The notes under the pieces were generated by a model. That model had not been told where the DNA came from, searched no databases, and saw only the letters and a program-made list of their open reading frames with translations. Of a DNA stretch of 64,000 nucleotides, positions 2,698 through 52,762 are shown piece after piece. The position numbers and the translations under genes were made by a program. The stretch lies in the sequence record NC_042013.1. One strand, written 5' to 3'. Within the stretch, counting starts at the first letter, position 1. Each line of letters opens with the position of its first letter.

Positions 2698-3054
2698 ATG
2701 GCAAATTTTTTCACATTCAAAGTAGATGTAGATGGTAATATTATTGAAGAAGTAAGTGCCGTTTATATCAATGGATATCAAGTTGATGAACGTATTCTTG
2801 AAGATGTTATGTTTCGTATCAAGCCAACCAGTGATCGTAAAGATATCATTGTTGAGGTGGTTGAAGATAGCGCAGAATATTTTAACAAATTGAACACAGC
2901 AAAGTGGCTCAAGGAAGTAAAGAATTGCGCAATCAATTACGACGTCTTTTCTCTATCTGAAGATGGTTCGGATGATGACGGCGTGTTGTATGACAAAGAC
3001 AAACCATATTCCGATCAAGGCGCATATTACGTTTCGGAACCCGTTTTTCCATGA
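2698..3054 (+). CDS. hypothetical protein
   Basis: Compact ORF in operon. Confidence 0.7.
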   Translation: MANFFTFKVDVDGNIIEEVSAVYINGYQVDERILEDVMFRIKPTSDRKDIIVEVVEDSAEYFNKLNTAKWLKEVKNCAINYDVFSLSEDGSDDDGVLYDKDKPYSDQGAYYVSEPVFP

Positions 3055-3383
3055 CCAATTTTACGCCTAATCTTAACATATTATTTGATAAGATGGTTGA
3101 ATGGGATATATTTTGTTTATCATATACTCCAGACGAGGAAGATTGCATTCGTGTTACTCGGTTGTCCTCGTTTGGTAGTTATTCTGCTCAAAATATAGAT
3201 GAAATATTACCGTTCAAGATTTTTGATTCTATTTCCGATGTCAGACCGTGTTTAACATTTGATTTGTTTTCAAGATCGTCTTTTAGTGAATTTCTGTTTA
3301 GATCAGATGGAAATTTTGTAGACCTAACAACAGAACAAGCATCATCAATTCTTAAAAAACATACAACTCTTTTAGACTGTTAA
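3051..3383 (+). CDS. ISDIIP-motif family A protein
   Basis: IDEILPF. Confidence 0.7.
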   Translation: MTNFTPNLNILFDKMVEWDIFCLSYTPDEEDCIRVTRLSSFGSYSAQNIDEILPFKIFDSISDVRPCLTFDLFSRSSFSEFLFRSDGNFVDLTTEQASSILKKHTTLLDC

Positions 3384-3407
3384 TTTAACGTAAAAGGAAA
3401 GTTTATT

Positions 3408-3794
3408 ATGAAAAAATATGTAAGTTTTGACTTTCATACCAATTACTTCAGTGACGACGACCCTGTTTTTCATGTCTTTGGCTTCACTGTTGATGATCCA
3501 ACCGGAAAGATTCAAGAGTTGGTCAACGGTGATGATTGGGTAACAGAACTCGCGGAGGAATTAGAAGGGATGCTAGAAACTTCCCTTACAGCGGTTTTTT
3601 ATCCAGAGGAACAATTCTTCGGTTCTACCAGCTATGAAATCGATGATAGCCATTTGGATAACATTATTTCAGGAATGGAATATGCTCGCAAATGGTTTGA
3701 AGAAGCGGGTGGTATTGTTGGGGAACTTGTCACAGTAGTTGGTGGAGAACAGGATGATCTTGAGGGAAAACTCAAAGTCGAACTTGGAATGTAA
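3408..3794 (+). CDS. acidic hypothetical protein
   Basis: AAGGA RBS, 128 aa. Confidence 0.7.
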   Translation: MKKYVSFDFHTNYFSDDDPVFHVFGFTVDDPTGKIQELVNGDDWVTELAEELEGMLETSLTAVFYPEEQFFGSTSYEIDDSHLDNIISGMEYARKWFEEAGGIVGELVTVVGGEQDDLEGKLKVELGM

Positions 3795-3803
3795 TATTTT
3801 CGA

Positions 3804-3831
3804 TTGACATTTATAGTTCTTCCGTTATTAT
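3804..3831 (+). promoter_or_regulatory. sigma70-type early promoter
   Basis: TTGACA-N16-TATTAT. Confidence 0.65.
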
Positions 3832-3861
3832 GAATCTAATTTGTTCAATAAGGAGATTCAT

Positions 3862-4158
3862 ATGCCGTATTTTCGTGAGCTACAAGATGGTAATGGTGTT
3901 TTGGTATCTTCTATGAAGATGCTAACCAAAGCAGATGTCGAGTATGTTGCCGAGGTTTTTAACCTCCTTGATCCAAGCCATCTCTATGAGGCGTCACGCA
4001 ATTTTATGGGATATGAGGGTTTTGACGGCACCGTATCCCGTTACGAAAAATCAGTGTTTGGTCATAAGGGGAAATACATCGAAACTATTTCCCGCCAAGA
4101 ACTTCTCGAAATTTGTGATGACAGACCTATGGTTCACCAATCGGTTTCACATGTCTGA
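3862..4158 (+). CDS. hypothetical protein
   Basis: AAGGAG RBS before ATG 3862. Confidence 0.7.
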   Translation: MPYFRELQDGNGVLVSSMKMLTKADVEYVAEVFNLLDPSHLYEASRNFMGYEGFDGTVSRYEKSVFGHKGKYIETISRQELLEICDDRPMVHQSVSHV

Positions 4159-4468
4159 GACAATTTTAAAAAATAATATATTGAAATGTGATTTTTCCAT
4201 AATCACATTTTCTGGAACCGAGTTTAGTGTGTATTTTTATAGACTCGGGAAATACGAATGCACAATGGTTAACTGCATATCTGAAATATTTCCATTCGTA
4301 ATAGACGTAGATAATATAAGTTCTATGACTATCAATGTTTGGGATAACAACGAAACTGTACAAGTTGATATTCATCCAAAGGGTGAATATGAAAGACTTG
4401 ACCACGAAGATTCTATTAAATTTCTTATTGAAAATTCAACATTCGGTGAGATGCGTTATGTCTCCTGA
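4151..4468 (+). CDS. family A protein
   Basis: ISEIFPF; start re-assigned to ATG 4151. Confidence 0.7.
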   Translation: MSETILKNNILKCDFSIITFSGTEFSVYFYRLGKYECTMVNCISEIFPFVIDVDNISSMTINVWDNNETVQVDIHPKGEYERLDHEDSIKFLIENSTFGEMRYVS

Positions 4469-4757
4469 ACAAAAACGTTTGATCCATATCTTCACAAAAT
4501 TTAACGTCGATGAAATCGAATATTACAACGGCGAGTATATGTTGGATGTCAATGGTACTTACGTCTATACCTACGATATTAAAGACTACTTACCCGTTGT
4601 GATTAAAGCAGGTGATATATTCGAATTCAGTATAAAAAATGTTCACGGGACTATCGTTCTTCATATACCAACCTTTCAACACAAACCTCTTTATTCCGAA
4701 AAAGTTTATGATTGGTTTAAAGCCAACACTACGTTTTATGATTTTTCACCGGATTGA
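4458..4757 (+). CDS. family A protein
   Basis: IKDYLPV; start re-assigned to ATG 4458. Confidence 0.7.
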   Translation: MSPEQKRLIHIFTKFNVDEIEYYNGEYMLDVNGTYVYTYDIKDYLPVVIKAGDIFEFSIKNVHGTIVLHIPTFQHKPLYSEKVYDWFKANTTFYDFSPD

Positions 4758-4811: not shown

Positions 4812-5102
4812 ATGTCTGGTAATATGAAAACGTTAATGGGTGCTCTTGAGTATTTTGGTATAGATTCTATTAACTATGTTAACAAAGTTTTCTATGTTGT
4901 CATTGACAGAAATAGATCATCTTCAGAAACATTAGAAAATATTTTTCCGTTCTTCACGGAAATTAGCCCTATGTCATCTTTTGCTTTACGAAGAAGTGAT
5001 AAATTTGTACCGCTTGTTTTTGATGAAGGAATCAGACTAAACACTGGACCAGAAATAGATGCGTGGGTACGAAGGCATACGTCATTTGAAAGTTTTTGGT
5101 AA
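4812..5102 (+). CDS. family A protein
   Basis: LENIFPF; AGGAG RBS. Confidence 0.7.
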   Translation: MSGNMKTLMGALEYFGIDSINYVNKVFYVVIDRNRSSSETLENIFPFFTEISPMSSFALRRSDKFVPLVFDEGIRLNTGPEIDAWVRRHTSFESFW

Positions 5103-5365
5103 TGATTACATTCGTTGAAATGATTGAAAAATACGATATCGAAGAACTTGAACTGTTTAGTGGTTCATTCACTATCTCCTTTACCCACGGACTTATATTC
5201 GTTGAGGTAGAAGACATTAGCGATATCATCCCTATCGTTATAGAATCGGAAGAAGAATTTAGATGCACACGCGATTTTAGTATCACTACTATGCATTTTT
5301 TCAATAATTTTATCAACAAAGACGCGTGGGCAAATAGATCAACCTCGTTCGAAAGATTTAAATGA
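5096..5365 (+). CDS. family A protein
   Basis: ISDIIPI. Confidence 0.72.
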   Translation: MVMITFVEMIEKYDIEELELFSGSFTISFTHGLIFVEVEDISDIIPIVIESEEEFRCTRDFSITTMHFFNNFINKDAWANRSTSFERFK

Positions 5366-6125: not shown

Positions 6126-6587
6126 ATGACTGTATTTGTAATCGAGCGTTATTATTGGAACGACAATGCTGATTGCCGTCCTTATTGGGCAAAACTTTCG
6201 GATAAGTATTTTACCGATGAACCAGAGGAAGAAGTTAAGAAGCTTGTTGATCACCTCAACAAAAAGTTTGTCGCTGATATCATCGAGGATTTAAACGATG
6301 AATTGAAAGCGTATGAAAAAACTCGTGATGAGACCGACGCCAAGCTTACTTTGCTGAAAGAGATGGATGAGGTATTGGCAAAAGCTGTCGGGTTTGATAA
6401 GGAAAAATTTGAAAAGAAGCTTGCAGATACGATTGATAAAATCGACCGTATTAAGGATAAAATTACCAAATATGAAAGCGGTAATGGCGAGCTTACCAAG
6501 GAGAAATATGTTTATTCTCCTCTACAGTTTCATGGCATTGCTAACCTTTCCTCTGGCCCTAAGTTGGTGAAAAAAATCCAGAAATGA
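6126..6587 (+). CDS. coiled-coil hypothetical protein
   Basis: AAGGAG RBS; long K/E/D heptad segment. Confidence 0.75.
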   Translation: MTVFVIERYYWNDNADCRPYWAKLSDKYFTDEPEEEVKKLVDHLNKKFVADIIEDLNDELKAYEKTRDETDAKLTLLKEMDEVLAKAVGFDKEKFEKKLADTIDKIDRIKDKITKYESGNGELTKEKYVYSPLQFHGIANLSSGPKLVKKIQK

Positions 6588-6922
6588 TAACGGTGGATAA
6601 TAAATGTTGGGTGGAACGTATGGAGAAACTATTCTCCATACACGACCTGATTTATATAGATATTCATAAACTACCAGTCGTCGGATATTATTGCAGAATA
6701 ACATCTAGTAGAAATCAACATTCATTTAGTATTGAAGATTTCGACAGTTTTATTCCATATAAAATAGATATAAACCCAATTGTTAGTAATATTTGGATTT
6801 CTAATTATCCAACCGAAAAATTTGTATATAAAATATCTACCATAGTCGACCACGTGTATACTAGTCACTGTGATGACGTCGCTATCAACATGATTAGACA
6901 ACTTACCACTATAGGTGAATAA
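6584..6922 (+). CDS. family A protein
   Basis: FDSFIPY. Confidence 0.68.
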   Translation: MITVDNKCWVERMEKLFSIHDLIYIDIHKLPVVGYYCRITSSRNQHSFSIEDFDSFIPYKIDINPIVSNIWISNYPTEKFVYKISTIVDHVYTSHCDDVAINMIRQLTTIGE

Positions 6923-7261
6923 ATGGAAAATGACGCTCGTTTCGCCTTTGGTTTATTTCTGATGAAACATTCCATTCAGTCAATCCAATGGCGCAATAAT
7001 AGGGCATGGTTAAAGAATAAACATGTTCGTTTTTACGGCGATAATATCAGCGATATTATCCCGTTTGTTGTTAATCCATTTGAAAATGAAGATTTAATCG
7101 GGCGAATTGGTCAAGTGTCGAGAGTAAACACACCTAGAGCATATTTTAAAATGTTCATCGACGGTAGTCAACTAATAGGATTAGATAGGGAAGAATCAAC
7201 CAAATTATTTTTTGAACATTTCGAATGGAGCGATGATGTATGTCAAATATTAAAATTATAA
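6923..7261 (+). CDS. family A protein
   Basis: ISDIIPF. Confidence 0.72.
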   Translation: MENDARFAFGLFLMKHSIQSIQWRNNRAWLKNKHVRFYGDNISDIIPFVVNPFENEDLIGRIGQVSRVNTPRAYFKMFIDGSQLIGLDREESTKLFFEHFEWSDDVCQILKL

Positions 7262-7545
7262 GAGATTTTTTTAGAAAATTTCGTATTAAAAGCGTTAGGT
7301 TTATCGCTGATAACAATAATAGTGGTTTCTTTGAAACCATTACATATAATAATTTTTATTATCAAAATCCTACTGAATTTGCCCCATTCCAAATCAATAT
7401 GGATGATTATAACCATTTCGAAATTTATATACCTGAGGACAAAACTCAAAATTGGAAAATATTTGTTTCATTCAACCATCCATCTATTCTTTCAACTGAT
7501 GAATGGCTTGCCTACAAATTTAGTATATTCGAGTATTATAAATGA
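7240..7545 (+). CDS. family A protein
   Basis: PTEFAPF. Confidence 0.62.
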   Translation: MSNIKIIRDFFRKFRIKSVRFIADNNNSGFFETITYNNFYYQNPTEFAPFQINMDDYNHFEIYIPEDKTQNWKIFVSFNHPSILSTDEWLAYKFSIFEYYK

Positions 7546-7826
7546 CTGATCATTACTTTTATAGAAAAGCTCGTGAAAAATTACATTCTATCAAAGTAGA
7601 ACACATTTACCGTAGCAGTGAAAACAAGCTGTTTGTAGTTGTTAATTCGGTCAGGCACAAATGTGACCGCATAAGTGACATAATTCCTTATGAATTTCAT
7701 GTTGATGAATGGATTGAGTTTGATTTGGGTATAAGTTCTTGGGCTGGTTATGTCGTTAAAAATCACACGGCACTTGCCGTCAATGATGATATATGGAGAA
7801 TAATATACAAATCTTTTAATCAGTAA
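7542..7826 (+). CDS. family A protein
   Basis: ISDIIPY. Confidence 0.72.
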   Translation: MTDHYFYRKAREKLHSIKVEHIYRSSENKLFVVVNSVRHKCDRISDIIPYEFHVDEWIEFDLGISSWAGYVVKNHTALAVNDDIWRIIYKSFNQ

Positions 7827-7882
7827 GGGATTGACTTTTTATTATAAACATGTAAAGTCATTATAGAAAAAAGGAGATTTAG

Positions 7883-8155
7883 ATGAGTGATATTTTTGAA
7901 CATCGAAAAATCGTTAATGACAACTTGGACGAAATTGCGTCGATTTCCAACCTCCTTCACGAGGTTGGTATGACGAAGCTTGCTAAACGGTTGGACGTCG
8001 TTATTGGAAACATTAATACATCAGTTATTAGTGTAGTAGAATCACATATGACTAAACTTGATGAAATGGTTTCACAAGCAAATCAGAATACGAAAAATAT
8101 TCTTGAAGCCCTTGTTACTGGCGTTGATCTTGGAAGGAGAGAATCACTTGATTAA
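7883..8155 (+). CDS. helical hypothetical protein
   Basis: AAGGAG RBS, upstream TTGACT. Confidence 0.72.
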   Translation: MSDIFEHRKIVNDNLDEIASISNLLHEVGMTKLAKRLDVVIGNINTSVISVVESHMTKLDEMVSQANQNTKNILEALVTGVDLGRRESLD

Positions 8156-8372
8156 CGTTGAGTTGATGATTGGAATGTATCTCGTGGTGGCTGTAGGTGT
8201 TTCTCTGTTTCTAGGAACTCGTACCCCTCTACCAGCCAGTTTAAAAGGTTGCATTCTAATTTTCATCATTTCCGTTCTTTGGCCGGTTCTCATTGTTGCA
8301 TATATTCTTATGATGGCATATGCCTTTGTTTCAACACTTTTCAAAAACCCTGAAGGTGATACGCGTGATTAA
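8148..8372 (+). CDS. small membrane protein
   Basis: Two hydrophobic helices; TTG start after AAGGAG. Confidence 0.6.
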   Translation: MINVELMIGMYLVVAVGVSLFLGTRTPLPASLKGCILIFIISVLWPVLIVAYILMMAYAFVSTLFKNPEGDTRD

Positions 8373-8373
8373 T

Positions 8374-8682
8374 ATGGATGATTTTTCTATTATTGAATAT
8401 TACGAGGAAGAACACGGATTTCTCAATACGTTCCCCGTGTCGTCCATTTCACGCAACGAGGTTGTCCAAAATCTAAAAGAATTGATTGAAGACGAAACGT
8501 ATGTCGTCAATTCATATACACCTCAGTTTTTTATGTGGTATAAAATCATGCTCAACCGTAATTATTTCCGCAACCATAATGGAAACCTTGATCACGAAAA
8601 GGTTGAAACATTTGTACATAATGTCGAACCCCTCCAGATGTGGGTTTTGAAAAACCATACATCATTGAAAGATAAGGATTGA
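8374..8682 (+). CDS. hypothetical protein
   Basis: ORF in operon. Confidence 0.65.
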   Translation: MDDFSIIEYYEEEHGFLNTFPVSSISRNEVVQNLKELIEDETYVVNSYTPQFFMWYKIMLNRNYFRNHNGNLDHEKVETFVHNVEPLQMWVLKNHTSLKDKD

Positions 8683-8685
8683 TAA

Positions 8686-8931
8686 ATGTCGAAGACTGTT
8701 GAGGAAATCGCAGAAGAGTTGCGCGGAACACCAACGTTCCTTTCAACGGTCTTGGAGAAGTATGAAATGGAACACCTCGAGAATGATATCGAATGGTGTC
8801 TCTCATTAGATGATTTGGTTTTCTGTTGTGAGATATGTGAGTGGTGGCATACTATTTCGGAATGTGCAGATGCAGGTCGCTCACAAGGAATTTGTGAAGA
8901 ATGTTTTAACGAAGGAGAAAGTGATGACTGA
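8686..8931 (+). CDS. putative Zn-binding protein
   Basis: CEIC ... CEEC pair of CxxC motifs. Confidence 0.7.
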   Translation: MSKTVEEIAEELRGTPTFLSTVLEKYEMEHLENDIEWCLSLDDLVFCCEICEWWHTISECADAGRSQGICEECFNEGESDD

Positions 8932-9193
8932 CGGACTTACAGCGGGCAAGCTTATCGAAATGCTTCAAACGATTGATCCTGACACTCCTGTTCATTTTCA
9001 TCATGGCGGTGGTGATTTCCCTCGTATGATCCAAGACCCTGAAAATAAGCACCCTTACAGTAAAATGTTTGGTTATATCGAACTTGCACAATCTAAAAGC
9101 GACGAAAGCTTTTTCGTCACGACGAGTGATTCTTTTTACAAAAAAATTAAGAAGAATTGTCACAAGCCGTTTAAAGCATTGGTGGTAATGTGA
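8924..9193 (+). CDS. hypothetical protein
   Basis: AAGGAG RBS; LTAGKLIEMLQTIDPD start. Confidence 0.7.
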   Translation: MTDGLTAGKLIEMLQTIDPDTPVHFHHGGGDFPRMIQDPENKHPYSKMFGYIELAQSKSDESFFVTTSDSFYKKIKKNCHKPFKALVVM

Positions 9194-9402
9194 AACTTAC
9201 TCCTAAGCAAGAATCCATTCTATGTTTTCTTTGTCCCTCATCTAATCCTTATTGGGGAACGACCGAATGGCCGGATAAAGACGAACTGAGGATGATCCGA
9301 AAACTCCAACGAATGAAACTTGTACACCTCCATCACGGACACTGGAGAACAACGGTGAAAGGTAAAGAGATTGTATTAGGATGGATGGCAGATGACATTT
9401 GA
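9190..9402 (+). CDS. small winged-helix-like protein
   Basis: LTPKQESIL ... KLQRMKLV ... WRTTVKG pattern. Confidence 0.45.
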   Translation: MKLTPKQESILCFLCPSSNPYWGTTEWPDKDELRMIRKLQRMKLVHLHHGHWRTTVKGKEIVLGWMADDI

Positions 9403-9694
9403 ATATAATTCCATTATAGAACCATATTCCGATGAGGAAATTGTTTTTGGAACCCCTTCTTATATGATAGCTAATGATTTTTATAATCTTTATAGATCAC
9501 AGTTAGGTCTTTGTCAGTTGGTGGTAACACCGACACATATAAAAGGACACGTTGGGTTTTCTGAATTCAAAGGTCTTTATATGTGTCAAACATATGTATC
9601 GATTCCGTTTTATGGTCAAACACCAAAAGCGCTGGTTAAACGATTTAAATCTATCGTGAAATTTCTAGATAAACAGCAAAGGGGAACAACATGA
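9392..9694 (+). CDS. hypothetical protein
   Basis: ORF in operon. Confidence 0.65.
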   Translation: MTFEYNSIIEPYSDEEIVFGTPSYMIANDFYNLYRSQLGLCQLVVTPTHIKGHVGFSEFKGLYMCQTYVSIPFYGQTPKALVKRFKSIVKFLDKQQRGTT

Positions 9695-11640: not shown

Positions 11641-11751
11641 ATAAACATTCCATTGACTTAATTTATATCAAATTGTAACAATACCTAGCAATAAAAAATG
11701 GTTGACTATAGCTAAATTAATGATATTATTGATAGATTATAGGAGACGTGT

Positions 11752-12111
11752 ATGCGCCAATCAATTACATATAAAAGCTTTGCCGGATGGGATGATAAAG
11801 AGAGAAGAGACTATCTATATAGCCGAACGAATATTAAATTTGAAAACTTTCCCAATTTTGAATCTGGTATTTGTCAAGCAGTGAAAATAGATAATGGAAT
11901 TTATTGGGCGCATTATTCAAATTCATTGGAAAGCTTTTTGCCAATGAAACACGATATGAAAAATATAACTACGCTGGATTATGGATCAGTAACTGATTAT
12001 TTTCCGCAAGATTTAATACGATTAACCGTTGGAGATTGTAATAGCCCTATCATGGATAACGTTTCATTTTTTGAAATAGAAGATTTTTTGATTAAGCATT
12101 GCACAATATGA
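11752..12111 (+). CDS. family A protein (two motif copies)
   Basis: ITYKS; GIYW; LESFLPM and VTDYFPQ; AGGAG RBS. Confidence 0.72.
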   Translation: MRQSITYKSFAGWDDKERRDYLYSRTNIKFENFPNFESGICQAVKIDNGIYWAHYSNSLESFLPMKHDMKNITTLDYGSVTDYFPQDLIRLTVGDCNSPIMDNVSFFEIEDFLIKHCTI

Positions 12112-12121: not shown

Positions 12122-12448
12122 ATGATGTATATCGTGTATAGAAGCTACGACAATTTAGATAACCTTCGTCACTCGACTATTGTTGAAAATCATTTCATAC
12201 CAGAAAGTTATCCTACTGGCGCTTGGTTCTCTGGTAATGATGAAACTGAACACGTAGAAGATTACCTTCCAATAAAATGTGTCCCATCAGAAAATGTTGA
12301 GTGCGCATTTCTATCTAATCAAAATCTAACCATCTATTCAAAGAACCAAAATCTACGCCGTCATAATCTTGAAAGACATGATGGTTGGAATATGATACAA
12401 TGGATCATACGGGTGGAAATAGAACTTTCTGATTTTGAGGCTTATTAA
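12122..12448 (+). CDS. family A protein
   Basis: IVYRS; GAW; VEDYLPI. Confidence 0.72.
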   Translation: MMYIVYRSYDNLDNLRHSTIVENHFIPESYPTGAWFSGNDETEHVEDYLPIKCVPSENVECAFLSNQNLTIYSKNQNLRRHNLERHDGWNMIQWIIRVEIELSDFEAY

Positions 12449-12774
12449 TGGTTCATTTTCAATATAAATCATTGAGTTATTTGACCGATCAAGAAATAAT
12501 GGATCATATGCTGATTTATTGGGATATGGATGAGGAGGAAACATTTGAATATAGGCGTCTGAAAACAATCATCACTACAGTAACTCCAAAAGATTACACG
12601 TGCTATCCAGACATAACTGATGTCATACCGATTGATCACGTCCCTGAGTCGATCATTAAATTTACCTATGAAATTGATACTCTGTCTTTAAGAGTATGGC
12701 AAGACCGTAAACTTCCTTTATCAATGCGGGTTGAGTTACATGAAATAGGTGAAGTTTTGGGAGAATGGAATTAA
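12448..12774 (+). CDS. family A protein
   Basis: FQYKS; ITDVIPI. Confidence 0.72.
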   Translation: MVHFQYKSLSYLTDQEIMDHMLIYWDMDEEETFEYRRLKTIITTVTPKDYTCYPDITDVIPIDHVPESIIKFTYEIDTLSLRVWQDRKLPLSMRVELHEIGEVLGEWN

Positions 12775-37839: not shown

Positions 37840-37847
37840 TATTTATA
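37840..37847 (-). promoter_or_regulatory. T4-like late promoter
   Basis: Exact TATAAATA on - strand. Confidence 0.7.
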
Positions 37848-37868
37848 CATGGCTATTGAATTGCTTTT

Positions 37869-42185: not shown

Positions 42186-42223
42186 TATACTGTCCCGAAT
42201 TTATATTAAAGGTATAATTTGGT

Positions 42224-43678: not shown

Positions 43679-43722
43679 GATGAAACTCTCCTATATAGAG
43701 ATATTTATTACATAATCATAAA

Positions 43723-43748
43723 AAAAGGTCTGGAAAACCAGACCTTTT
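43723..43748 (-). terminator. intrinsic terminator
   Basis: AAAAGGTCTGG/CCAGACCTTTT after 43774-44202. Confidence 0.85.
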
Positions 43749-43773
43749 AAGAATAATAAATCAGTTTGAAATA

Positions 43774-44202
43774 TTAGCCCTTAGCGATAGAAACTGACCA
43801 AGAAACGACCGCAACCTTAACAGCAGCCGTAATTGCTGTTGATGAAATCTTGAGATCGCCGTCGCCGGTAGCAGCGGTTACTGTACCATCCATCTGAATG
43901 TCACCATCCGTATCAAGTACGCGGAACCAAGCAGCTTCGCCAGTTGCCAACGCGTCAACAGTAGTGATTTCTTCAGCAACAGCAGTAGCACCAATAGCAG
44001 ATGCGGTAGCTGTTCCAAAGGATGGATTAGGAAGGTCATATTCAACCAATAGAACCTGTGTAGTAGTAGCGTCATCAATCGCAGTTGGACGCTCACCTGA
44101 CCAAATCTGAAGCTTAGCGTTTGCGCCAGCACCTTCGTCAAAGGAGTCGACCATCGCATTTACAACAGAAATAGCGGAGTTAGTAGAAATTCTTGCAACC
44201 AT
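43774..44202 (-). CDS. small virion structural protein, probable major fibre/whisker subunit
   Basis: I[WY]SG.RP, L.NPSF, ATG.A.WFR, DG.V....GD.DL.I.S pattern; optimal codons; own late promoter and terminator. Confidence 0.65.
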   Translation of the reverse strand: MVARISTNSAISVVNAMVDSFDEGAGANAKLQIWSGERPTAIDDATTTQVLLVEYDLPNPSFGTATASAIGATAVAEEITTVDALATGEAAWFRVLDTDGDIQMDGTVTAATGDGDLKISSTAITAAVKVAVVSWSVSIAKG

Positions 44203-44243
44203 GTTAAAAACCCTTTCGGTATCGTGTATATTGTTATTTATCG

Positions 44244-44786
44244 TTAAGAAATAATAGTAGCCGTTTTAGTAGCAAATAAAGTCAATGCAACGTCAACATT
44301 TTGTATCGCAGTTCCACTAATTAAGCGCAATTTATCACCAGCAACAAAATCAACGGGGCCGTTGAAACCAATCATTAGCGGGTCTTCAATAAAAAATGTC
44401 CCAACAATGGTATCGTTTTTGAAAATATTTATTGAACTGGTTGCGCCATCAGGGAGTTCTGAATATGATATTTGTGTACCCGTCAAGTCATCCGGTAATG
44501 TGAAAGACTCTGTTGCGATAAACGTAAATAATACCTCATCAGCGTCCCAACCATCACTTAAACTAAATGCCAAATTCATAGGGATTGTTTTACCAATAAT
44601 AGTTTCTGGAATTTCAGCAAGATCGAAACCATTATTTGTATCATTGACAACAACCGCCTTTCCAGCAGATGTCGAAATATCAAGGGTTCCTAAATCATCA
44701 AGATTGTCGGAATGGCCTTGGATTGTAACGCCGACCTTGTTGTCAACTAAAGAATTTACTGTTGTTTTATTGGTTTTGTATGACAT
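44244..44786 (-). CDS. virion structural protein (fibre-associated)
   Basis: GKAVVVN..NNGF linker, F.AGDKL C-domain; AATAAATA at 44810-44817 (-). Confidence 0.55.
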   Translation of the reverse strand: MSYKTNKTTVNSLVDNKVGVTIQGHSDNLDDLGTLDISTSAGKAVVVNDTNNGFDLAEIPETIIGKTIPMNLAFSLSDGWDADEVLFTFIATESFTLPDDLTGTQISYSELPDGATSSINIFKNDTIVGTFFIEDPLMIGFNGPVDFVAGDKLRLISGTAIQNVDVALTLFATKTATIIS

Positions 44787-44809: not shown

Positions 44810-44848
44810 TATTTATTCATTTGACAAAATATCGTTTTCCATTATAAA
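44810..44848. promoter_or_regulatory. back-to-back late (-) and early (+) promoters
   Basis: AATAAATA (-) 44810-44817; TTGACA-N16-TATAAA (+) 44821-44848. Confidence 0.65.
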
Positions 44849-44874
44849 TTAATTTCTTACATAAAGGAGAATGC

Positions 44875-45147
44875 ATGAGTGTAGTCAACCATTTTAGCCT
44901 GTATAGATTACCTCTGCATAAAGCGGATAGATTTCTGTCTGAAAATTTAGTGCCAGTTGTGTATGATAACCGTTTCGGTGAATATACATATGTCTTAGTG
45001 AGAAATTATAAACATCAATTTTTTGGATATCTGTCCGGTGGAATAGAGGACTTCTTTCCGTTTGTTAATTCAGAATATGACGAGGAACGTCCGTCAATTA
45101 CATATGTCACTTATAATAGTCAGGTTAGGGATATTTTAGAAAAATGA
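44875..45147 (+). CDS. family A protein
   Basis: IEDFFPF; AAGGAG RBS. Confidence 0.7.
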   Translation: MSVVNHFSLYRLPLHKADRFLSENLVPVVYDNRFGEYTYVLVRNYKHQFFGYLSGGIEDFFPFVNSEYDEERPSITYVTYNSQVRDILEK

Positions 45148-45425
45148 GAATATCTATACGAAGAGATAGGGCCGAAATTTTGAAAACGTGGTATGGCGTA
45201 AGAACGTGTGTATACCACCCACCACGTAATCATATGAATGATCCGAACATAGAATATGAATACGCTTATATATGGCATTATTCATACAATAATGTATTAT
45301 ATTTTGGGTATGTATATTATTTGTCTGATATTGTGCCAGTGTCCGAGGATAGATTAATGTACAACGATGACGAAACATGGAATAATATAAATTCGGTTCA
45401 CACCGTTATACAGGATTGTTTATAA
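45144..45425 (+). CDS. family A protein
   Basis: LSDIVPV. Confidence 0.7.
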   Translation: MRISIRRDRAEILKTWYGVRTCVYHPPRNHMNDPNIEYEYAYIWHYSYNNVLYFGYVYYLSDIVPVSEDRLMYNDDETWNNINSVHTVIQDCL

Positions 45426-45989
45426 ATGGCAACAAAACTTACCTATTACAGTAAATCTCGGTATAGCGACTCATACTGGAAAATGATAATTGATGGTACG
45501 TACCATCATCGATCAGCATCTCTTGAAGATATCATTCCTGCCATATATGAACCAGTATACTATGCGTCGTTTCTACATTATAGAACAACGAATACTGTTG
45601 ACATAGAATGTTTAGATGGGAATTTCAAATTATCAAATTCAAATCTTATAGAAGCTATTGATGTGGTTCACGACATCAACATAACAGGTATTAACGTCTT
45701 CGTGTTTTATGGAACATTGTTTTACGCATCAAAACAGATGCCACAAGCGGAATTGGAATGTGTGAAATATTATAAGTGGGGATATCAAAAAACCACAAGC
45801 GGTGGGACAAATGTATCTAAGTATGGGCGAACGATTGACTTAGTGACGAAATTGAAAGACGAACCAGAATTTGAAATGGACGCCTTTATTATGTCAAAAA
45901 ACGGCACTACCCTTTATTATGGTGAAGAAAAAGTTCATACTAATATAAGAACGTTGACTGGTTTGATAAAAAAATATTCAAAAAAGTAA
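45426..45989 (+). CDS. family A protein with C-terminal extension
   Basis: LTYYS; LEDIIPA. Confidence 0.7.
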   Translation: MATKLTYYSKSRYSDSYWKMIIDGTYHHRSASLEDIIPAIYEPVYYASFLHYRTTNTVDIECLDGNFKLSNSNLIEAIDVVHDINITGINVFVFYGTLFYASKQMPQAELECVKYYKWGYQKTTSGGTNVSKYGRTIDLVTKLKDEPEFEMDAFIMSKNGTTLYYGEEKVHTNIRTLTGLIKKYSKK

Positions 45990-45997: not shown

Positions 45998-46315
45998 ATG
46001 GGAAACGTAAGCATTAGATATTACACTGATCGGTTTATTCAGTATGAGGGGCGATATACCGGTTATATGCGTAATAGTTTCGAAATGTGTAATTTGGAAT
46101 TAGATGACGTTATCGCGCACGGGTCTTTTTGGTTTGTGGGGAGATTTGCGGCTTTAACAATTGATGACTTAATCCCATTCAAATGTGATATATCAGAAGA
46201 TGTCAGGGTTGCGAGATATGACGATGTGACATTTAGTAATGTAAGATATCATTCTGGAATTAGTGTCAATTTTGATGAAATTACAATCGAACAATTTTTA
46301 CTAGAATTGGAATAA
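45998..46315 (+). CDS. family A protein
   Basis: IRYY; GSFW; IDDLIPF. Confidence 0.72.
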   Translation: MGNVSIRYYTDRFIQYEGRYTGYMRNSFEMCNLELDDVIAHGSFWFVGRFAALTIDDLIPFKCDISEDVRVARYDDVTFSNVRYHSGISVNFDEITIEQFLLELE

Positions 46316-46317: not shown

Positions 46318-46545
46318 ATGGTTTTAGAATTTATTAGTAAAAATTTATTTAAAGATCGTGAAGGTTGGTGGGTAAATGATAGACTCGTTGACCCAATAGA
46401 CTATTATCCAATCGTTATTGAACCATCCAGCAAAGTTGAGTATATTTCAATTGCACAACAAACCGTATTTTTTAAATTAATAGAAGAAAAAACAAAAGTT
46501 TGTAGCGTGGAAGAATTCATAAGAGAGGAAATATGGCTGTGTTGA
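46318..46545 (+). CDS. family A protein
   Basis: GWW; PIDYYPI. Confidence 0.66.
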   Translation: MVLEFISKNLFKDREGWWVNDRLVDPIDYYPIVIEPSSKVEYISIAQQTVFFKLIEEKTKVCSVEEFIREEIWLC

Positions 46546-46787
46546 TTTTTGAGAATACCACACCTGATCATCCTTGGTATTGGTATCATTCCACTCTTAA
46601 ATATGCGACAAAAATAAGTGATTATATTCCTTTTGAAAATTTTATTTTCAAAACAGACATTCACGTTGTTAACATATCAGAAACATCGATTCTTATAAGA
46701 GATTTTGATGGGGAGACCGAGATTCATTATTATGAATCTATGGATGAATTGTATCATTACATAAAGGATAAAATTACATATGTTTAA
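46533..46787 (+). CDS. family A protein
   Basis: ISDYIPF. Confidence 0.7.
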   Translation: MAVLIFENTTPDHPWYWYHSTLKYATKISDYIPFENFIFKTDIHVVNISETSILIRDFDGETEIHYYESMDELYHYIKDKITYV

Positions 46788-47139
46788 TGATAACACTTTG
46801 ATATATTATTCTAACGATTATTTTGAAAATTATTTTGAAGATAGGTCCGCAGAACTATTGATGAATAATTTTGAAACAAATGTTCCTATAAACATTATTA
46901 ATTTAGGAAATTTCTGGTGTTTCGGTAAAACTTCAAATAGTTTCAGAGCGTATAGTTATATAAAAGATATATCATTATTGATTCCGTATGTTCCACGTCT
47001 ATCTCCTGACGTTATGAAATTATCGGTTACCAATAAAAATGTCTCGGTTAATAAAAGGAAACATTTTTTTAAAGACCATTTGGTTTTTACATTTGATCAC
47101 CTCGTTGAGGTTTTTAAGAATTATGAGTTGACTTGTTAA
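46780..47139 (+). CDS. family A protein
   Basis: LIYYS; GNFW; ISLLIPY. Confidence 0.68.
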   Translation: MFNDNTLIYYSNDYFENYFEDRSAELLMNNFETNVPINIINLGNFWCFGKTSNSFRAYSYIKDISLLIPYVPRLSPDVMKLSVTNKNVSVNKRKHFFKDHLVFTFDHLVEVFKNYELTC

Positions 47140-47926: not shown

Positions 47927-47968
47927 TTGACTTTATTTTTGGATAGGGTATAACAACATCATCGAAAC
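47927..47968 (+). promoter_or_regulatory. early promoter with ATCGAAAC leader
   Basis: TTGACT-N16-TATAAC, ATCGAAAC 47961-47968. Confidence 0.75.
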
Positions 47969-47987
47969 AAACAAAGGAGACGACATT

Positions 47988-48797: not shown

Positions 48798-48808
48798 AGG
48801 AGGTGTTT

Positions 48809-49486
48809 ATGTATACTTTTTATGCCGATGCTAAAAAGAGATCATTTAACGAAAACGTTTCTATTTCACTGACAGCCGCTGCGGTTCTCACGTACATTTC
48901 ATTTCTAACATCATACATCCTTGGATGGGCTGACAAAGTTTCTGTTCTGGAAATGTTTGTGGTTTTCACTAGCTATATGTGTACTATTCTTATGTCATTC
49001 CAAATTCGATTTGGATACATCATCGGAATTGTAACAACAGCCGCTACTTCGTTTCTTCTTTGGAATAGTGATTCACCAGCACTTGCAATGTTCAACCTTT
49101 ATCTAGTTGGTTCATTGCTTTATGGTTTCATTTATTGGAAATCAGACGATAATAGCCGCCCTGTTTCTAGAATTGGTCGTAATGAAATTCTTATTATGAT
49201 TGGTTTTGCGATTTTGCTTAGTGTTTCGTACGTTACTGCTATAACTATTGTTACCCCAAATATGAAACTTGATTATGTTGATATTACATTGATGGCGCTT
49301 TCCGGTGTTGCACAGTTGATGCTTGATCGTAAAAAGCTTGAAACTTGGTTGGTATGGGGTGTGGTTAATATCATTAGCATTCCATATTTCATCTATACGG
49401 GATTGTATATGGTCGCTTTTCAGTTCTTGTTCTTCCTAATCAATGCTGGAGTTTCGTATTTTGCTTGGAAATCAGAAATTAAGTAA
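48809..49486 (+). CDS. pnuC: nicotinamide riboside transporter PnuC
   Basis: About 7 TM; E...V.TSY.CT.L, Q.LM..KKLE.W..W..VN motifs; adjacent NadR. Confidence 0.88.
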   Translation: MYTFYADAKKRSFNENVSISLTAAAVLTYISFLTSYILGWADKVSVLEMFVVFTSYMCTILMSFQIRFGYIIGIVTTAATSFLLWNSDSPALAMFNLYLVGSLLYGFIYWKSDDNSRPVSRIGRNEILIMIGFAILLSVSYVTAITIVTPNMKLDYVDITLMALSGVAQLMLDRKKLETWLVWGVVNIISIPYFIYTGLYMVAFQFLFFLINAGVSYFAWKSEIK

Positions 49487-49739
49487 AATAGAAATCGATG
49501 AGGTAGAACGTAAATTAGACGTTCTACTTCAAACCGAACTTAAAACTTTGCGCGGGCGATATTATAACGCCGAGGTTACCATATTATCTGGAAAATGGAA
49601 AAATAGAAAAGGGTTGATTAAAAATATATATCAGTGTCACGGCAGTGAATTATATTTTACCATTCACCCTATTTCCTTAAAACCACCATATGATTTACTA
49701 GACCCTATATATCTTAATAAAAGAGGATTTGATTTATGA
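49443..49739 (+). CDS. small KOW-like protein (start uncertain)
   Basis: VTILSGKWKNRKGLI. Confidence 0.5.
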   Translation: MLEFRILLGNQKLSKIEIDEVERKLDVLLQTELKTLRGRYYNAEVTILSGKWKNRKGLIKNIYQCHGSELYFTIHPISLKPPYDLLDPIYLNKRGFDL

Positions 49740-50761
49740 GTGGCGTTCTTCTGTTGACTGGACTTGTACCGACGATTGGGCATAAGCGCCTAATTCAATT
49801 CTCCCATAGTTTTCTAAAAGGACAGCCGCTACACGTAATTCTGTCATCACGATCTAAAGAACCTGTTCCCGGTAAAATGCGGGTAGATTCATTGAAAACT
49901 GAATTTCCACAGAAAAATATTAGTATTCATCATCATTTTGATAATGACGCACCTCAAAATCCTCGTCATGAAAATGACGAATGGTTTTGGGAATACTGGC
50001 GTGATACCGTTGAAAAGTTCGCAGGAAAAACAAAATACTTCTTTGCATCAGAAAAATACGGAATCGATATGGCAAAGGTTTTGAAAAACACCTTTGTTCC
50101 TTGTGATATCGCACGTTTTACATATAACGTAAAAGGTACTGATGTTAGAAATTCAATTATTCCTCGTTTTGATGACGTATTACCATCTTTCAAAAAGAAC
50201 CTTATTACTAAGGTTACATTTTTTGGTCAAGAGTCTGTAGGGAAAAGCACCCTTACATCACTTATGCAAACGAGTTCTCTTGATGGAACAATTGTTCCAG
50301 AATGGGCGCGTGAGTACCTAGAAACGATTGGTCCAGAACTATCCATCAAGAAATTAGAAATGATTGTAGACGGCCAATATGCCGCACAGCAATCCATCTA
50401 TGATATGTGCACAACACCATATGTGTTTCAAGACACCGATTTGTTGAGTACGATTGGGTATTATAGAATTTACGGAAAAACATGTCCTGAAAAATTGCTA
50501 AAACATTTCTATGAAACAAAATCGGACGTTTATTTTCTGCTCCGCGACAATATCCCGTTTGTTGAGGATCAACTTCGGTATGGTGGAAAGGTCCGTGAAT
50601 CAACCCTAGATTTTTGGATTAACATCCTCAAGGAATTCAATTGCAACTATCACATAGTTGAAAGTGAAACATTAAGTGGCAGGCTTGATGAGGTTGAAAA
50701 TTATCTTTATAATTATGAACGCCCATTTTTGAAATCCATCAGGGAATTTGAACGTGAATAA
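49736..50761 (+). CDS. nadR: NadR-like NMN adenylyltransferase / ribosylnicotinamide kinase
   Basis: N-terminal PTIGH nucleotidyltransferase motif; GQESVGKST P-loop; PEWAREYL; DTD. Confidence 0.88.
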   Translation: MSGVLLLTGLVPTIGHKRLIQFSHSFLKGQPLHVILSSRSKEPVPGKMRVDSLKTEFPQKNISIHHHFDNDAPQNPRHENDEWFWEYWRDTVEKFAGKTKYFFASEKYGIDMAKVLKNTFVPCDIARFTYNVKGTDVRNSIIPRFDDVLPSFKKNLITKVTFFGQESVGKSTLTSLMQTSSLDGTIVPEWAREYLETIGPELSIKKLEMIVDGQYAAQQSIYDMCTTPYVFQDTDLLSTIGYYRIYGKTCPEKLLKHFYETKSDVYFLLRDNIPFVEDQLRYGGKVRESTLDFWINILKEFNCNYHIVESETLSGRLDEVENYLYNYERPFLKSIREFERE

Positions 50762-51032
50762 AATATCTATAAAGCAAACTGCTCAATACATAGAATATTA
50801 CAAAGGTGGTATTTTGCATAGGGACGATGGCCCTGCTATTGAATATTTCGATGGTGGGTACACTTACTATAAAAATGGTAAAATACATCGTACCGATGGG
50901 CCAGCCGCAACTACAAGCAACGGATGCTTTTTTTGGTGGTATGATAATGTATGGACAAAAGCACAGTTTCCAGATGGTTTCATAGAATATAAAGGTACAA
51001 CCGAACAAGAATACCTTAGAAAAAACGGTTGA
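50748..51032 (+). CDS. HRxDGPA repeat protein
   Basis: LHRDDGPAI and IHRTDGPAA repeats. Confidence 0.78.
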   Translation: MNVNKISIKQTAQYIEYYKGGILHRDDGPAIEYFDGGYTYYKNGKIHRTDGPAATTSNGCFFWWYDNVWTKAQFPDGFIEYKGTTEQEYLRKNG

Positions 51033-51085
51033 CTTAATTTATTATACATTATATGGTTGGGTTAATGATCACAGGAGACCCCACT

Positions 51086-51361
51086 ATGAATGTTTTGGAA
51101 ATCACCGTTGAAAATAACAATAATGCGATGTTGGTTGTTGCCAGTGCCTTTATTGATGGTGAACGTGAAATCAAGGATATCGTAAAGCCGACCTCTGGTT
51201 CGTCTATTAAAGATAGTAGGTTTGCTGCAAAATGCATTTCTGAAAATGTATGGTCTGGAGATTTTGATATTCTTCGTGTTAATGGTTTTGATCATCCAAT
51301 TTCTACAATCGATAACGTTATAACATTCGGGTCGGTAATTAGAGAAGCATTCTATGAATAG
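51086..51361 (+). CDS. hypothetical protein
   Basis: AGGAG RBS. Confidence 0.68.
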   Translation: MNVLEITVENNNNAMLVVASAFIDGEREIKDIVKPTSGSSIKDSRFAAKCISENVWSGDFDILRVNGFDHPISTIDNVITFGSVIREAFYE

Positions 51362-51689
51362 TGGTTTCACTATAAAATTAGTAGCTGGTGTAATTGGTTA
51401 TGGTAATCATCAAAAAACAGACATGGTATTGATTAACGATATTTCTGATATTTTGCCATACAAATTGGATAAAGATTTTATTCTAACACATCGTTATATA
51501 AGTTACTACAATATTAATGATATTGAAGATAATTATTTGGTGGCTTACTGTCAGAACTATGACGATATTGAATTGATAAAACGAACTGGAAAATGCTGGA
51601 TGATATATTATAAATCAGAAGATGTGGTTGTAGTTCCAGAATTTAGCGATTGGTTAGAAATGTACGAAAGGAAGAAAAATGAATTTTGA
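51354..51689 (+). CDS. family A protein
   Basis: ISDILPY. Confidence 0.72.
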   Translation: MNSGFTIKLVAGVIGYGNHQKTDMVLINDISDILPYKLDKDFILTHRYISYYNINDIEDNYLVAYCQNYDDIELIKRTGKCWMIYYKSEDVVVVPEFSDWLEMYERKKNEF

Positions 51690-52098
51690 TTTTGTTAATG
51701 GCGAGTGGGTACTGTCTCTGAAGTCTGGAAAATATACCGCTAACCAGTTGATGGATCGAGTTGAAAAATGGTTCAATGATGAGGGCCTTGTTAGCGGGGA
51801 CTATCCACGAACAAAACTGTTCTGGAATAACTATGAAATGCTGGTCGAATCTTCCTCAAAAGTAAATTACGGAAAAGACAAGGCCGGAAAAATGGTTGAA
51901 ACCCCTGACTGGTACAAGTCTGCATTGGTTCTATTTTTTATGTACGTGCAGTCTTCTGTATATTGCCTTACCGAGCAAAAGGCCAAAGAAACATTGAATC
52001 CGAGTAATGCAAAGGATGCGAAGGAAATCGATAAGCTTGTAAACAAAGCAATGGGTGATCTTGCAAACGTTTTGTTTGGAAAACCTCAATGGCCTTAA
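51679..52098 (+). CDS. hypothetical protein
   Basis: 139-aa ORF. Confidence 0.7.
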   Translation: MNFDFVNGEWVLSLKSGKYTANQLMDRVEKWFNDEGLVSGDYPRTKLFWNNYEMLVESSSKVNYGKDKAGKMVETPDWYKSALVLFFMYVQSSVYCLTEQKAKETLNPSNAKDAKEIDKLVNKAMGDLANVLFGKPQWP

Positions 52099-52439
52099 CG
52101 GATGTAAATGAAACTATTCATTTAACCACTGTTTACGATGATCCCATGTCGTTTGGTTCATACATCTCGATTGATACAGAGAATTTTTGTGATTACATTC
52201 CTATCTCTTTGTCGAAAGAAACGTTATCATCTATAACAGTTATAAGTACATATTTACCATATTCACCCTCGCTTGATGGTAATGCTCGCCGCCGATTCTT
52301 TAAAACAGATGAGGACTTTGAGGTATCAAAAGAACAAAAATGGTGTGTTGGTATTAGATATTTGAAAAATGGTGTATGGCATATATCTGCCCCTAATATT
52401 CGTATTGCACTGATGCGTCTCGAGGAAATGCTTGGATGA
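52089..52439 (+). CDS. family A protein
   Basis: FCDYIPI. Confidence 0.66.
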   Translation: MALTDVNETIHLTTVYDDPMSFGSYISIDTENFCDYIPISLSKETLSSITVISTYLPYSPSLDGNARRRFFKTDEDFEVSKEQKWCVGIRYLKNGVWHISAPNIRIALMRLEEMLG

Positions 52440-52762
52440 TCCTTGATATAGTAATAGACCACGATAATGAATTATATTATGTGAGTCATGGTGAAGAACA
52501 CATACGGTCTTTTTGTGATGGTTTATATGATTTTATTCCATATCAAATCCCCCTCTCGTTTAATAGGGTGGTTGAGATATTCTCTATTGTATATGAAAAT
52601 GATTGTATTGGGTTAGACAAAATAGAATTCCACTCATCTATTGATACCGAAATTGTTTTTAAACAAAAGTGGTATGTTTATGTATTACTTCTTTCTGGTC
52701 AATCATTCTTTTTTGCTAATTTTGAACGCGTTGAACGCTTTTTAATAAATACTGATAAATGA
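52436..52762 (+). CDS. family A protein
   Basis: LYDFIPY. Confidence 0.68.
   Translation: MILDIVIDHDNELYYVSHGEEHIRSFCDGLYDFIPYQIPLSFNRVVEIFSIVYENDCIGLDKIEFHSSIDTEIVFKQKWYVYVLLLSGQSFFFANFERVERFLINTDK

Follow-up and report, generated by a model that had tools for sequence, protein, structure and literature searches.

Agrobacterium phage Atu_ph07 (genus Polybotosvirus) is a jumbo myovirus of A. tumefaciens C58 with a genome of 490,380 bp. The stretch analyzed here, referred to as the window, comprises 64,000 nucleotides that are identical in sequence to positions 372001-436000, plus strand, of the phage record (NC_042013.1/MF403008.1). Between window positions 3051 and 52762, six clusters of small open reading frames (ORFs) encode one very divergent family of paralogous proteins that share a central motif, h-[ST]-D-h-h-P-h, where h is a hydrophobic residue. 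The window holds 40 solid and about 12 weak members. An initial annotation, made from the letters alone, had recognized the paralogues and placed them at 3.0-7.8, 11.7-17.6, 19.8-21.8, 24.3-31.1, 44.9-47.1, and 51.3-52.8 kb; all six ranges are correct and the family is real, but its size was understated, since it extends beyond the window to 111-129 ORFs genome-wide.

The Motif and the Family in the Window

The strict pattern [ILVFP][STE][DEN]-h-h-P-[FYVI] occurs 25 times, comprising 24 occurrences in plus-strand ORFs and one in the minus-strand gene 19815-20135, against an expectation of 0.35 and a maximum of 3 in 1000 residue shuffles of the plus-strand ORFs (~70-fold enrichment). The shorter core [DEN]-h-h-P-h is found 41 times in plus-strand ORFs of at least 60 aa, compared with 8.3 ± 2.9 in shuffles. 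A chance motif in AT-rich ORFs is ruled out by the shuffle and frame controls, and the possibility raised in the initial annotation, that the motif might be no commoner than in shuffled sequence, is contradicted by these counts. The statement that at least 50 ORFs carry the motif stands only in part: the exact pattern is limited to 25 ORFs, 40 members are well supported, and 50 or more are reached only if the ~12 weak members are counted.

Pairwise phmmer comparison detects few pairs among the window ORFs, and the family is therefore invisible without profiles. A hidden Markov model (HMM) that started from the 25 motif ORFs and was iterated within the window (inclusion E<0.01) reaches 39 ORFs at E<0.01; among reversed and shuffled decoys, one scored E 0.009 in the last round and none fell below 1e-3. 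In full rebuilds that leave out one member at a time, ~26 of the 39 (about two thirds) clearly outscore the best decoy. Six members lack individual support in this leave-one-out procedure, namely those starting at 4812, 28255 (minus strand), 29075, 29675 (minus strand), 44875, and 45144. The profile trained on the whole genome retains 40 window ORFs, and profile-profile comparison (hhalign) places ~12 more plus-strand ORFs slightly above the antisense null (scores of 15-19 vs. 13.8).

Two properties of the arrays were described correctly at the outset. Genes are tightly coupled by ATGA-type overlaps (70 of 114 same-strand junctions overlap, 23 of those by 4 bases), and they are AT-richer than their surroundings, with a GC content of 32.7% compared with 36.8% in other small genes and 37.6% in large genes (p ~1e-7). 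Two further elements said to be shared by many members were overstated: an N-terminal h-x-Y-[RK]-S occurs in only 6 of 53 members (13 of 53 in a relaxed form) and a central G-x(1-2)-W in 14 of 53. What is widespread instead are three aromatic columns.

Members of the Six Clusters

All members lie on the plus strand unless stated otherwise, and the evidence is given in brackets. Cluster 1 opens with 3051-3383, which is absent from RefSeq (HMM; pN/pS, the ratio of nonsynonymous to synonymous differences per site, 0.35). It continues with gp518 at 4118-4468 (strict motif, HMM; orthologues P0002, P0003, and P0019), gp519 at 4458-4757 (HMM; leave-one-out E 7e-5), an unannotated ORF with weaker support at 4812-5102 (strict motif; leave-one-out E 0.25; hhalign 23), and gp520 at 5102-5365 (strict motif; leave-one-out E 1e-5), which is missing in relatives L004 and L006. 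Four unannotated members close the cluster, at 6584-6922 (HMM), 6923-7261 (strict motif; leave-one-out E 1e-3), 7240-7545 (strict motif, HMM; orthologue P0005), and 7542-7826 (strict motif; leave-one-out E 3e-4).

Cluster 2 begins with a probable remote member of weak support, 11752-12111 (hhalign 19.3 and 17.8 vs. an antisense null of 7.2 and 13.8). Two unannotated members follow, 12122-12448 (strict motif, HMM; orthologue P0006) and 12448-12774 (leave-one-out E 4e-5), the latter encoding the protein whose structure was modeled. The next three are 12765-13124, annotated in truncated form as gp531 (strict motif; leave-one-out E 3e-4), gp532 at 13117-13455 (strict motif, HMM), and 13452-13757, of which gp533 is a truncated version (genome-wide HMM E 8e-5). 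Further downstream lie the unannotated 14242-14544 (strict motif; HMM E 6e-6) and 14541-14867 (HMM E 4e-6), the truncated gp535 at 14874-15227 (leave-one-out E 7e-5; orthologue P0001), a weak, probable remote member at 15488-15715 (hhalign 12.7 and 17.0; core motif), gp537 at 15712-15960 (strict motif, HMM), and an unannotated member at 16952-17278 (strict motif; leave-one-out E 2e-5). Cluster 3 contains the inverted gp545 on the minus strand at 19815-20135 (strict motif; leave-one-out E 7e-6; pN/pS 0.31), a weak, probable remote member at 20197-20529 that is a paralogue of 27250-27585 (hhalign; phmmer pair), gp549 at 21215-21526 (strict motif, HMM), and the unannotated 21498-21815 (HMM E 5e-5).

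Cluster 4 starts with gp556 at 24318-24668 (genome-wide HMM E 9e-5) and 24964-25254, annotated truncated as gp558 (strict motif, HMM). Next come two probable remote members with weak support, 25247-25624 (hhalign 18.0) and 25614-25946 (hhalign 17.8 and 16.8), followed by the truncated gp560 at 25943-26272 (strict motif; leave-one-out E 1e-4) and gp562 at 26825-27196 (strict motif; HMM E 8e-8). Another two weak, probable remote members are 27250-27585, the phmmer partner of 20197-20529, and 27579-27914, the best-scoring non-member (hhalign 19.4). Then follow 27919-28275, unannotated (strict motif; leave-one-out E 8e-4), the inverted and likewise unannotated 28255-28713 on the minus strand (phmmer cluster with 12448; pN/pS 0.03; leave-one-out unsupported), 28746-29075, of which gp565 is a truncated form (HMM), and the unannotated, more weakly supported 29075-29392 (hhalign 29; leave-one-out E 0.47). 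The remainder consists of 29389-29685, unannotated (strict motif; leave-one-out E 5e-4; orthologue P0024), the inverted gp566 at 29675-30049 on the minus strand (core motif; leave-one-out E 10; pN/pS 0.21), 30370-30663, unannotated (strict motif, HMM), and gp568 at 30665-31147 (leave-one-out E 5e-5), which carries a C-terminal extension of ~60 aa without a Pfam domain. The three inverted copies reported initially (19815-20135, 28255-28713, and 29675-30049) all have pN/pS below 1; the third is only weakly supported as a member by its sequence.

In cluster 5, a member with weaker support at 44875-45147 (strict motif; leave-one-out E 0.85) precedes a weak, probable member at 45144-45425 (strict motif; hhalign 16.8; leave-one-out fails) and a possible remote one of 187 aa, also weak, at 45426-45989 (hhalign 19.0). 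The other four are 45998-46315 (HMM E 1e-6), 46318-46545 (HMM), 46533-46787 (strict motif; HMM E 6e-5), and 46780-47139 (HMM). Cluster 6 comprises 51354-51689 (strict motif; leave-one-out E 9e-4) and two possible remote members, both weak, at 52089-52439 (hhalign 15.3; core motif) and 52436-52762 (hhalign 15.9; core motif).

The first 32.2 kb of the window contain 34 members; in RefSeq, 10 of these are annotated at full length, 7 are truncated, and 17 are missing. Two antisense coding sequences in the same record, gp530 (12353-12544, minus) and gp534 (13941-14453, minus), are probably spurious: the ORFs that enclose them (12353-12568 and 13941-14465) are interrupted by stop codons in relatives and overlap plus-strand genes under purifying selection.

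Genome-Wide Expansion

The remainder of the Atu_ph07 genome, like that of the related Sinorhizobium phage Phosso, was scanned in pieces, each taken separately and without assembly. With the window-only HMM, dozens of copies are already detected outside the window. Genome-wide iteration ends with 111 ORFs at E<1e-3 in its last round, a number that rises to 129 for the union; no reversed or shuffled decoy (n = 4346) reaches E<1e-3. The copies are concentrated in two arms: arm 1 (260-322 kb) has ~66 copies, all on the minus strand, and arm 2 (363-425 kb) has ~53, mostly on the plus strand, with a few copies elsewhere. Together they account for ~15% of Atu_ph07 genes and ~8% of its DNA. The median member is 103 aa long, and identity between paralogues over match columns has a median of 17.5% and a maximum of 41%. 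The nearest detectable paralogue lies at a median distance of 2 kb, indicating growth by old tandem duplication.

The family is mentioned neither in the Atu_ph07 genome paper nor in the AP-J-162 paper, nor in the passages searched of a jumbo-phage survey that covers Atu_ph07 (PMC7824862). It was apparently overlooked because half of the checked copies are unannotated and pairwise identity is too low for BLAST.

Conserved Columns and Predicted Fold

No named family accounts for these proteins, as the initial annotation had stated: Pfam, PHROGs, NCBIfam, PADLOC, and both sequence and fold searches of the PDB are all negative. When 67 members and orthologues are scanned singly, none matches Pfam, PHROGs, NCBIfam, or PADLOC at or near the curated cut-offs, and no family in these collections is hit by more than two members (best E ~2e-3 to 1e-2). 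A family profile (A3) searched against PDB sequences with hmmsearch gives a best E of 0.52. The proteins are mostly acidic (median isoelectric point 5.65), contain on average 1.4 Cys, and have no transmembrane-like segment; membrane or secreted proteins are ruled out by this lack of hydrophobic segments.

The motif begins at a fixed position (median residue 50). Across 129 copies, the proline is present in 99%, the aspartate three positions before it in 80% (E in 9%), the preceding S/T in 66%, and D/N two positions further up in 62%, while hydrophobic residues fill four of the seven motif positions in 91-100% of copies. Outside the motif, three aromatic columns are aromatic or hydrophobic in 99-100%, and the C-terminal helix also has conserved hydrophobic residues. 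A first AlphaFold2 model, built on a 34-sequence alignment, is mediocre (predicted local distance difference test, pLDDT, 68.5), and its PDB fold search is uninformative. With this model, a search of BFVD returns significant matches only to other Atu_ph07 proteins, independently built models of paralogues being the top viral hits, and the BFVD model of the query protein superimposes on it with a template modeling (TM) score of only 0.36. The second model, of the 12448-12774 product with 67 sequences (window members plus orthologues), has a pLDDT of 92.3 and a predicted TM score (pTM) of 0.82. It predicts an alpha+beta domain with the order strand, helix, helix, five strands, helix: a strand at residues 3-8, helices at 14-24 and 29-38, strands at 40-45 and 50-53, a turn at 56-58 within the motif (55-62), strands at 69-75, 80-85, and 91-94, and a helix at 97-105. 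The pLDDT is ~90 across the motif.

Foldseek comparison of the better model with 350,542 PDB chains gives no match at E<=0.001, with a PTB domain ranking first (E 0.19) and TM scores no higher than 0.31. Because a confident predicted structure is without counterpart among solved structures, the domain is a candidate new fold. Rather than a free docking peptide, the motif seems to be a conserved core element of this fold, one of several.

Selection and Distribution in Relatives

Close metagenomic relatives, with 94-96% nucleotide identity, include contigs of 492,394 bp, 497,883 bp, and 262,223 bp, among others, and more distant ones have 68-86% identity. Gene callers of metagenome assemblies predict the small family ORFs too. 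The check across relatives proposed in the initial annotation as dN/dS was run as pooled Nei-Gojobori pN/pS for close and distant relatives separately, and selection turns out to be purifying, not diversifying. Family values are 0.275 (close) and 0.386 (distant), compared with 0.20 and 0.23 for neighboring genes and 0.70 and 0.83 for antisense ORFs. Non-coding ORFs are thereby ruled out. Members are slightly less constrained than their neighbors, and no stop codons were seen in family members of close relatives; the copies are therefore maintained individually. The pN/pS of orthologues gives no sign of diversifying selection between strains, and mapping orthologue differences onto profile columns in search of localized diversification reveals only a modest contrast. 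The motif changes least among the mapped elements (amino-acid change rate of 7.8% between orthologues vs. 12.9% overall). Some turnover of members occurs, with 5102-5365 missing in two of three distant relatives.

Phage Phosso (PV764938.1, 469 kb) has core genes and local gene order in common with Atu_ph07. Among its 2840 ORFs of at least 50 aa, no family match is found (best E 0.11 and 0.36), and the strict motif occurs only four times, twice in antisense ORFs. Either the expansion is thus confined to the Atu_ph07 clade, or members elsewhere have diverged beyond recognition. A tblastn search of 50,697 phage records with one member recovers only itself. A homologous-protein search with the 34-sequence alignment returns only orthologues from Atu_ph07-like contigs, and one with the 128-sequence genome-wide alignment returns nothing. 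An hmmsearch of 1.84 billion representatives gives 22 matches, all orthologues of window members except P0018, and does not establish the absence of homologues elsewhere because it is powerless at that database size. P0018, a 661-aa repeat protein matching in four stretches (E 1.5e-6), is judged a chance match to a low-complexity repeat, through its repeated I-S-S-x-L-P-Y-like segment. The family thus has the features of a lineage-specific multigene family of a large virus, namely tandem paralogues, restriction to one lineage, and selection.

Promoter-Like Sites and Virion Content

In the plus-strand gaps around the arrays, near-consensus -35/-10 pairs with 16-18 nt spacing are followed by a strong ribosome-binding site. 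Promoter-like sites number 16 in 2.5 kb of plus-strand gaps, or 6.35/kb vs. 0.75/kb elsewhere (8.5 times denser). Sigma-70-type sites on the plus strand stand ahead of cluster 1 (3804-3831, 11 of 12 matches, in an intergenic gap), cluster 2 (11702-11729), cluster 4 (23902-23929, followed by a conserved leader), and cluster 5 (44821-44850), and two more lie inside cluster 4 (27198-27227 and 30050-30077). A promoter-plus-leader cassette, consisting of a -35/-10 pair and a conserved ~20-nt leader that ends in a ribosome-binding site, recurs at 17636-17686, 18155-18208, 20572-20591, 23902-23954, and 47927-47980; the leader is present four times against an expectation of 0.01. The minus-strand block 32199-44786 has no such -35/-10 pairs, and its products gp574 and gp576-578 belong to the virion proteome. 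We infer, by analogy with T4-like phages, that the arrays may be transcribed early by unmodified host RNA polymerase.

From this window, the virion proteome contains gp514, 544, 548, 561, 574, and 576-578 (PMC6102473 Table S5). None of the annotated HMM-supported members is among the virion proteins (PMC6102473).

Possible Functions of the Arrays

These observations are tentatively read, at somewhat less than an even chance, as a lineage-specific, tandemly expanded family whose members would serve as a set of specific binders, or inhibitors, that target components of the host or of competitors. Transcribed from host-type sigma-70 promoters in long operons with translational coupling, the genes would yield their products early, to act in the cytoplasm of the infected cell; this setting is the most likely one because of the sigma-70-type promoters, the coupled operons, and the lack of any HMM-supported member in virions. 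The motif would act as the keystone of the fold, a short turn after strand 3 that is closed by the near-invariant proline and has its hydrophobic side chains packed inward, while the other residues, presumably mostly on the surface, have diverged to ~17% identity. Each copy probably binds a different host or competitor molecule, because each is individually under purifying selection in related phages, and the array would amount to a host-takeover or counter-defense binder repertoire on one scaffold. An anti-defense or host-takeover role, as suggested initially, is plausible. What the initial annotation had right is one genuine, very divergent paralogue family, whose context is also consistent with intracellular, non-structural, probably early proteins. 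Its picture of a constant docking motif on a hypervariable body is not supported: the motif occupies a fixed place inside the fold as a confidently modeled turn and is one of several core columns, and the variability of the body reflects old divergence between paralogues rather than ongoing variation, since orthologues are under purifying selection (pN/pS 0.28-0.39).

Several points weigh against the binder repertoire. About a quarter of the window members are weakly supported individually, and "early," "binder," and "anti-defense" are all inferred. The conserved D, S/T, and D/N might together constitute a functional site common to the members. The promoter-like sites are consensus matches only; a looser promoter pattern is not specially enriched in the family arms, and counts of it and of a T4-type late-promoter octamer in 20-kb bins of the whole genome do not set the arms apart. 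Since about half of the members are missing from the published annotation on which the virion proteomics relied, absence from virions covers the annotated ones only. Moreover, gp548 (20813-21160, plus, 115 aa), encoded inside the arrays, is among the virion proteins (three peptides, 40% coverage); it matches the core motif only loosely and lacks profile support. Finally, the search of 1.84 billion representatives missed even paralogues of the same genome and says little about distant homologues.

The polar residues of the motif invite a different reading. Since conserved non-hydrophobic residues are confined to the motif loop (D/N, S/T, D, and P, at the shares given above), docking is possible: the D-x-x-P turn would attach every paralogue to one phage or host hub, and the variable surface would recruit different substrates. 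The candidate hub is the phage's own Clp-type chaperone/protease set, as Atu_ph07 encodes ClpX, a ClpB-like protein, and several "ATP-dependent protease" genes, and both copy number and divergence suit one constant and one variable face. However, four of the seven motif positions are hydrophobic, the motif lies within a folded domain at high model confidence, and core aromatics make up the other conserved columns, a pattern expected where conservation does no more than mark the fold; Phosso, moreover, has the Clp set yet no family member. Such adaptors are considered unlikely. A bolder version, in which more than 100 binders on an unseen fold dock one hub (e.g., the Clp set) by the D-x-x-P turn and select different host proteins with their diversified surfaces, is a long shot; if true, such a hub-docked library would be a virus-encoded combinatorial targeting system in bacteria. 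It is likewise improbable that the family is an antidote or immunity array in which each paralogue is a decoy or inhibitor neutralizing one host toxin, such as an abortive-infection or toxin-antitoxin effector or a polymorphic toxin. Immunity-gene arrays (SUKH, Imm families) typically are tandem series of small, divergent alpha+beta proteins with conservation confined to core residues, and the Atu_ph07 proteins resemble them in this respect, being also acidic and soluble in a probably early context. In contrast to such arrays, they have no sequence or significant fold similarity to SUKH/Imm proteins (Pfam immunity families are matched by 0 of 67 members), and the S. aureus EsaG structure (8gup) is reached only at E 9.9 with the poor model and is absent from the top 50 with the good one. 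No toxin genes are adjacent, and no toxin domains occur in neighboring genes.

The order of secondary-structure elements, with a strand, helices, a strand meander, and a C-terminal helix, recalls PTB/PH and helix-grip (Bet v 1/START) domains, and the weak top Foldseek matches are PTB and PH domains. A small ligand-binding or enzymatic domain for small molecules, lipids, or peptides is nonetheless quite improbable. The best E is 0.19, and PTB/PH matches have a probability of <=0.15 and a root-mean-square deviation (rmsd) of 12-14 Å; those to CCM2, Dab2, and Fe65 PTB domains reach TM scores of 0.20-0.27 with an rmsd of ~14 Å. With six predicted strands, the domain falls outside the seven-stranded sandwich plus C-terminal helix of PTB/PH. 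Helix-grip proteins have a strand, two helices, six strands, a long helix, and a cavity in ~150 residues, whereas ~100 residues leave little room for a cavity; no helix-grip protein is among the matches listed, no SRPBCC protein is among the best 50 Foldseek matches or matched in Pfam, and beyond one Asp there is no conserved catalytic-looking set. The arrays might also be largely dispensable duplicated DNA, generated by unequal recombination in a genome with spare packaging capacity and having little individual function. Their AT-richness, a pN/pS slightly above that of neighbors, and some presence/absence variation between relatives fit this view, but pN/pS is well below the antisense control, close relatives have no stops, and the paralogues, although old (<=41% identity), are kept as intact ORFs, making it highly improbable. 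Packaged and injected proteins are a further candidate, modeled on the internal proteins of T-even phages, which form a polymorphic small-protein family with a short constant element. The detection of gp548 in virions favors this comparison; the sigma-70-type promoters and the missing HMM-supported members in the virion proteome speak against it. Furthermore, the T-even element is an N-terminal capsid-targeting peptide of proteins present in virions, whereas the constant element of Atu_ph07 is central and inside the fold, so that this explanation is given only the slimmest chance.

Comparison with Other Expanded Families

Like the Atu_ph07 arrays, early host-takeover blocks, such as the T4 early regions, the SPO1 host-takeover module, and the T5 pre-early genes, contain many small, tightly packed ORFs behind strong host-type promoters, but those are mostly unrelated ORFans, whereas Atu_ph07 has more than 100 paralogues of one fold. 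Eukaryotic large DNA viruses carry multigene families such as the asfarvirus multigene families (MGF), poxvirus ankyrin/PRANC proteins, and giant-virus BTB/F-box/MORN proteins. These are also tandem, divergent, non-structural paralogues in genome arms, and generally linked to host interaction; in contrast, the host of Atu_ph07 is bacterial, the domain is unrelated and unnamed, and the family is not known to be tied to a host pathway such as ubiquitination. Another case is the zinc-ribbon expansion of Bacillus phage G, with ~35 copies, which the survey terms "unprecedented" (Iyer et al., 2021, PMC7824862). As described there, it is likewise a lineage-specific expansion of a small domain in one jumbo phage. 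Measured against that account, the Atu_ph07 family has ~3 times as many copies (111-129), a different fold without metal-binding cysteines, an acidic character, and an arrangement in two arms of promoter-driven operons.

One previously unnoticed family thus makes up ~15% of the genes of one of the largest cultured phages, and the "ORFan" count of Atu_ph07 (390 of 714) is inflated by unrecognized paralogy. The family is also a natural experiment in the divergence limits of one small scaffold. If the copies do bind host proteins, they would help to explain how jumbo phages use their extra genome and would offer new inhibitors of bacterial processes or defenses.

Neighboring Genes and Local Duplication

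Within a family cluster, 24665-24970 (plus, 101 aa) encodes a cREC_REC domain (cyclic-phosphate processing receiver, PF20274, E 3e-23). Apart from this, a vWA-like fragment, DUF4116, and DUF6900, Pfam searches of the longer members and neighbors reveal no fusions or informative neighbors. The arrays are hot spots of insertion and deletion (3408-3794 and ~1201-1217; 6136-9582 in relative L004; 3997-7068 in L002). In distant relatives the 128-aa gene at 3408-3794 is swapped for ~3.6 kb that include an N6/N4 DNA methyltransferase, and 3 kb are inserted near window position 1200 in the 492-kb relative.

Duplication is not limited to the family. Unrelated small paralogue pairs detected by phmmer are 5362-5823/6126-6587, 55649-56131/56097-56633, 56645-57385/57363-58049, and 1268-1567/1551-1811, so that local duplication seems to be general in this region. 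On the minus strand, a two-gene module is duplicated in tandem at 32199-37816 and 37869-43678 (1383 + 486 aa and 1438 + 484 aa). The smaller protein of each module (gp574 and gp576) is in the virion proteome, the large ones have faint beta-propeller matches, and relatives L009 and L010 are without window positions 37850-43644, corresponding to the second copy.

Two tRNA genes lie between the arrays, at 18848-18923 and 58713-58787, for tRNA-Lys (anticodon ctt) and a tRNA with anticodon tca; the latter is a selenocysteine (SeC) tRNA according to ARAGORN and a suppressor according to the Atu_ph07 genome paper. Between clusters 5 and 6, 48803-50761 (plus) encodes a PnuC-like transporter and a NadR-type nicotinamide mononucleotide (NMN) adenylyltransferase of NAD+ salvage, a pair that Phosso has too, without the surrounding family genes.

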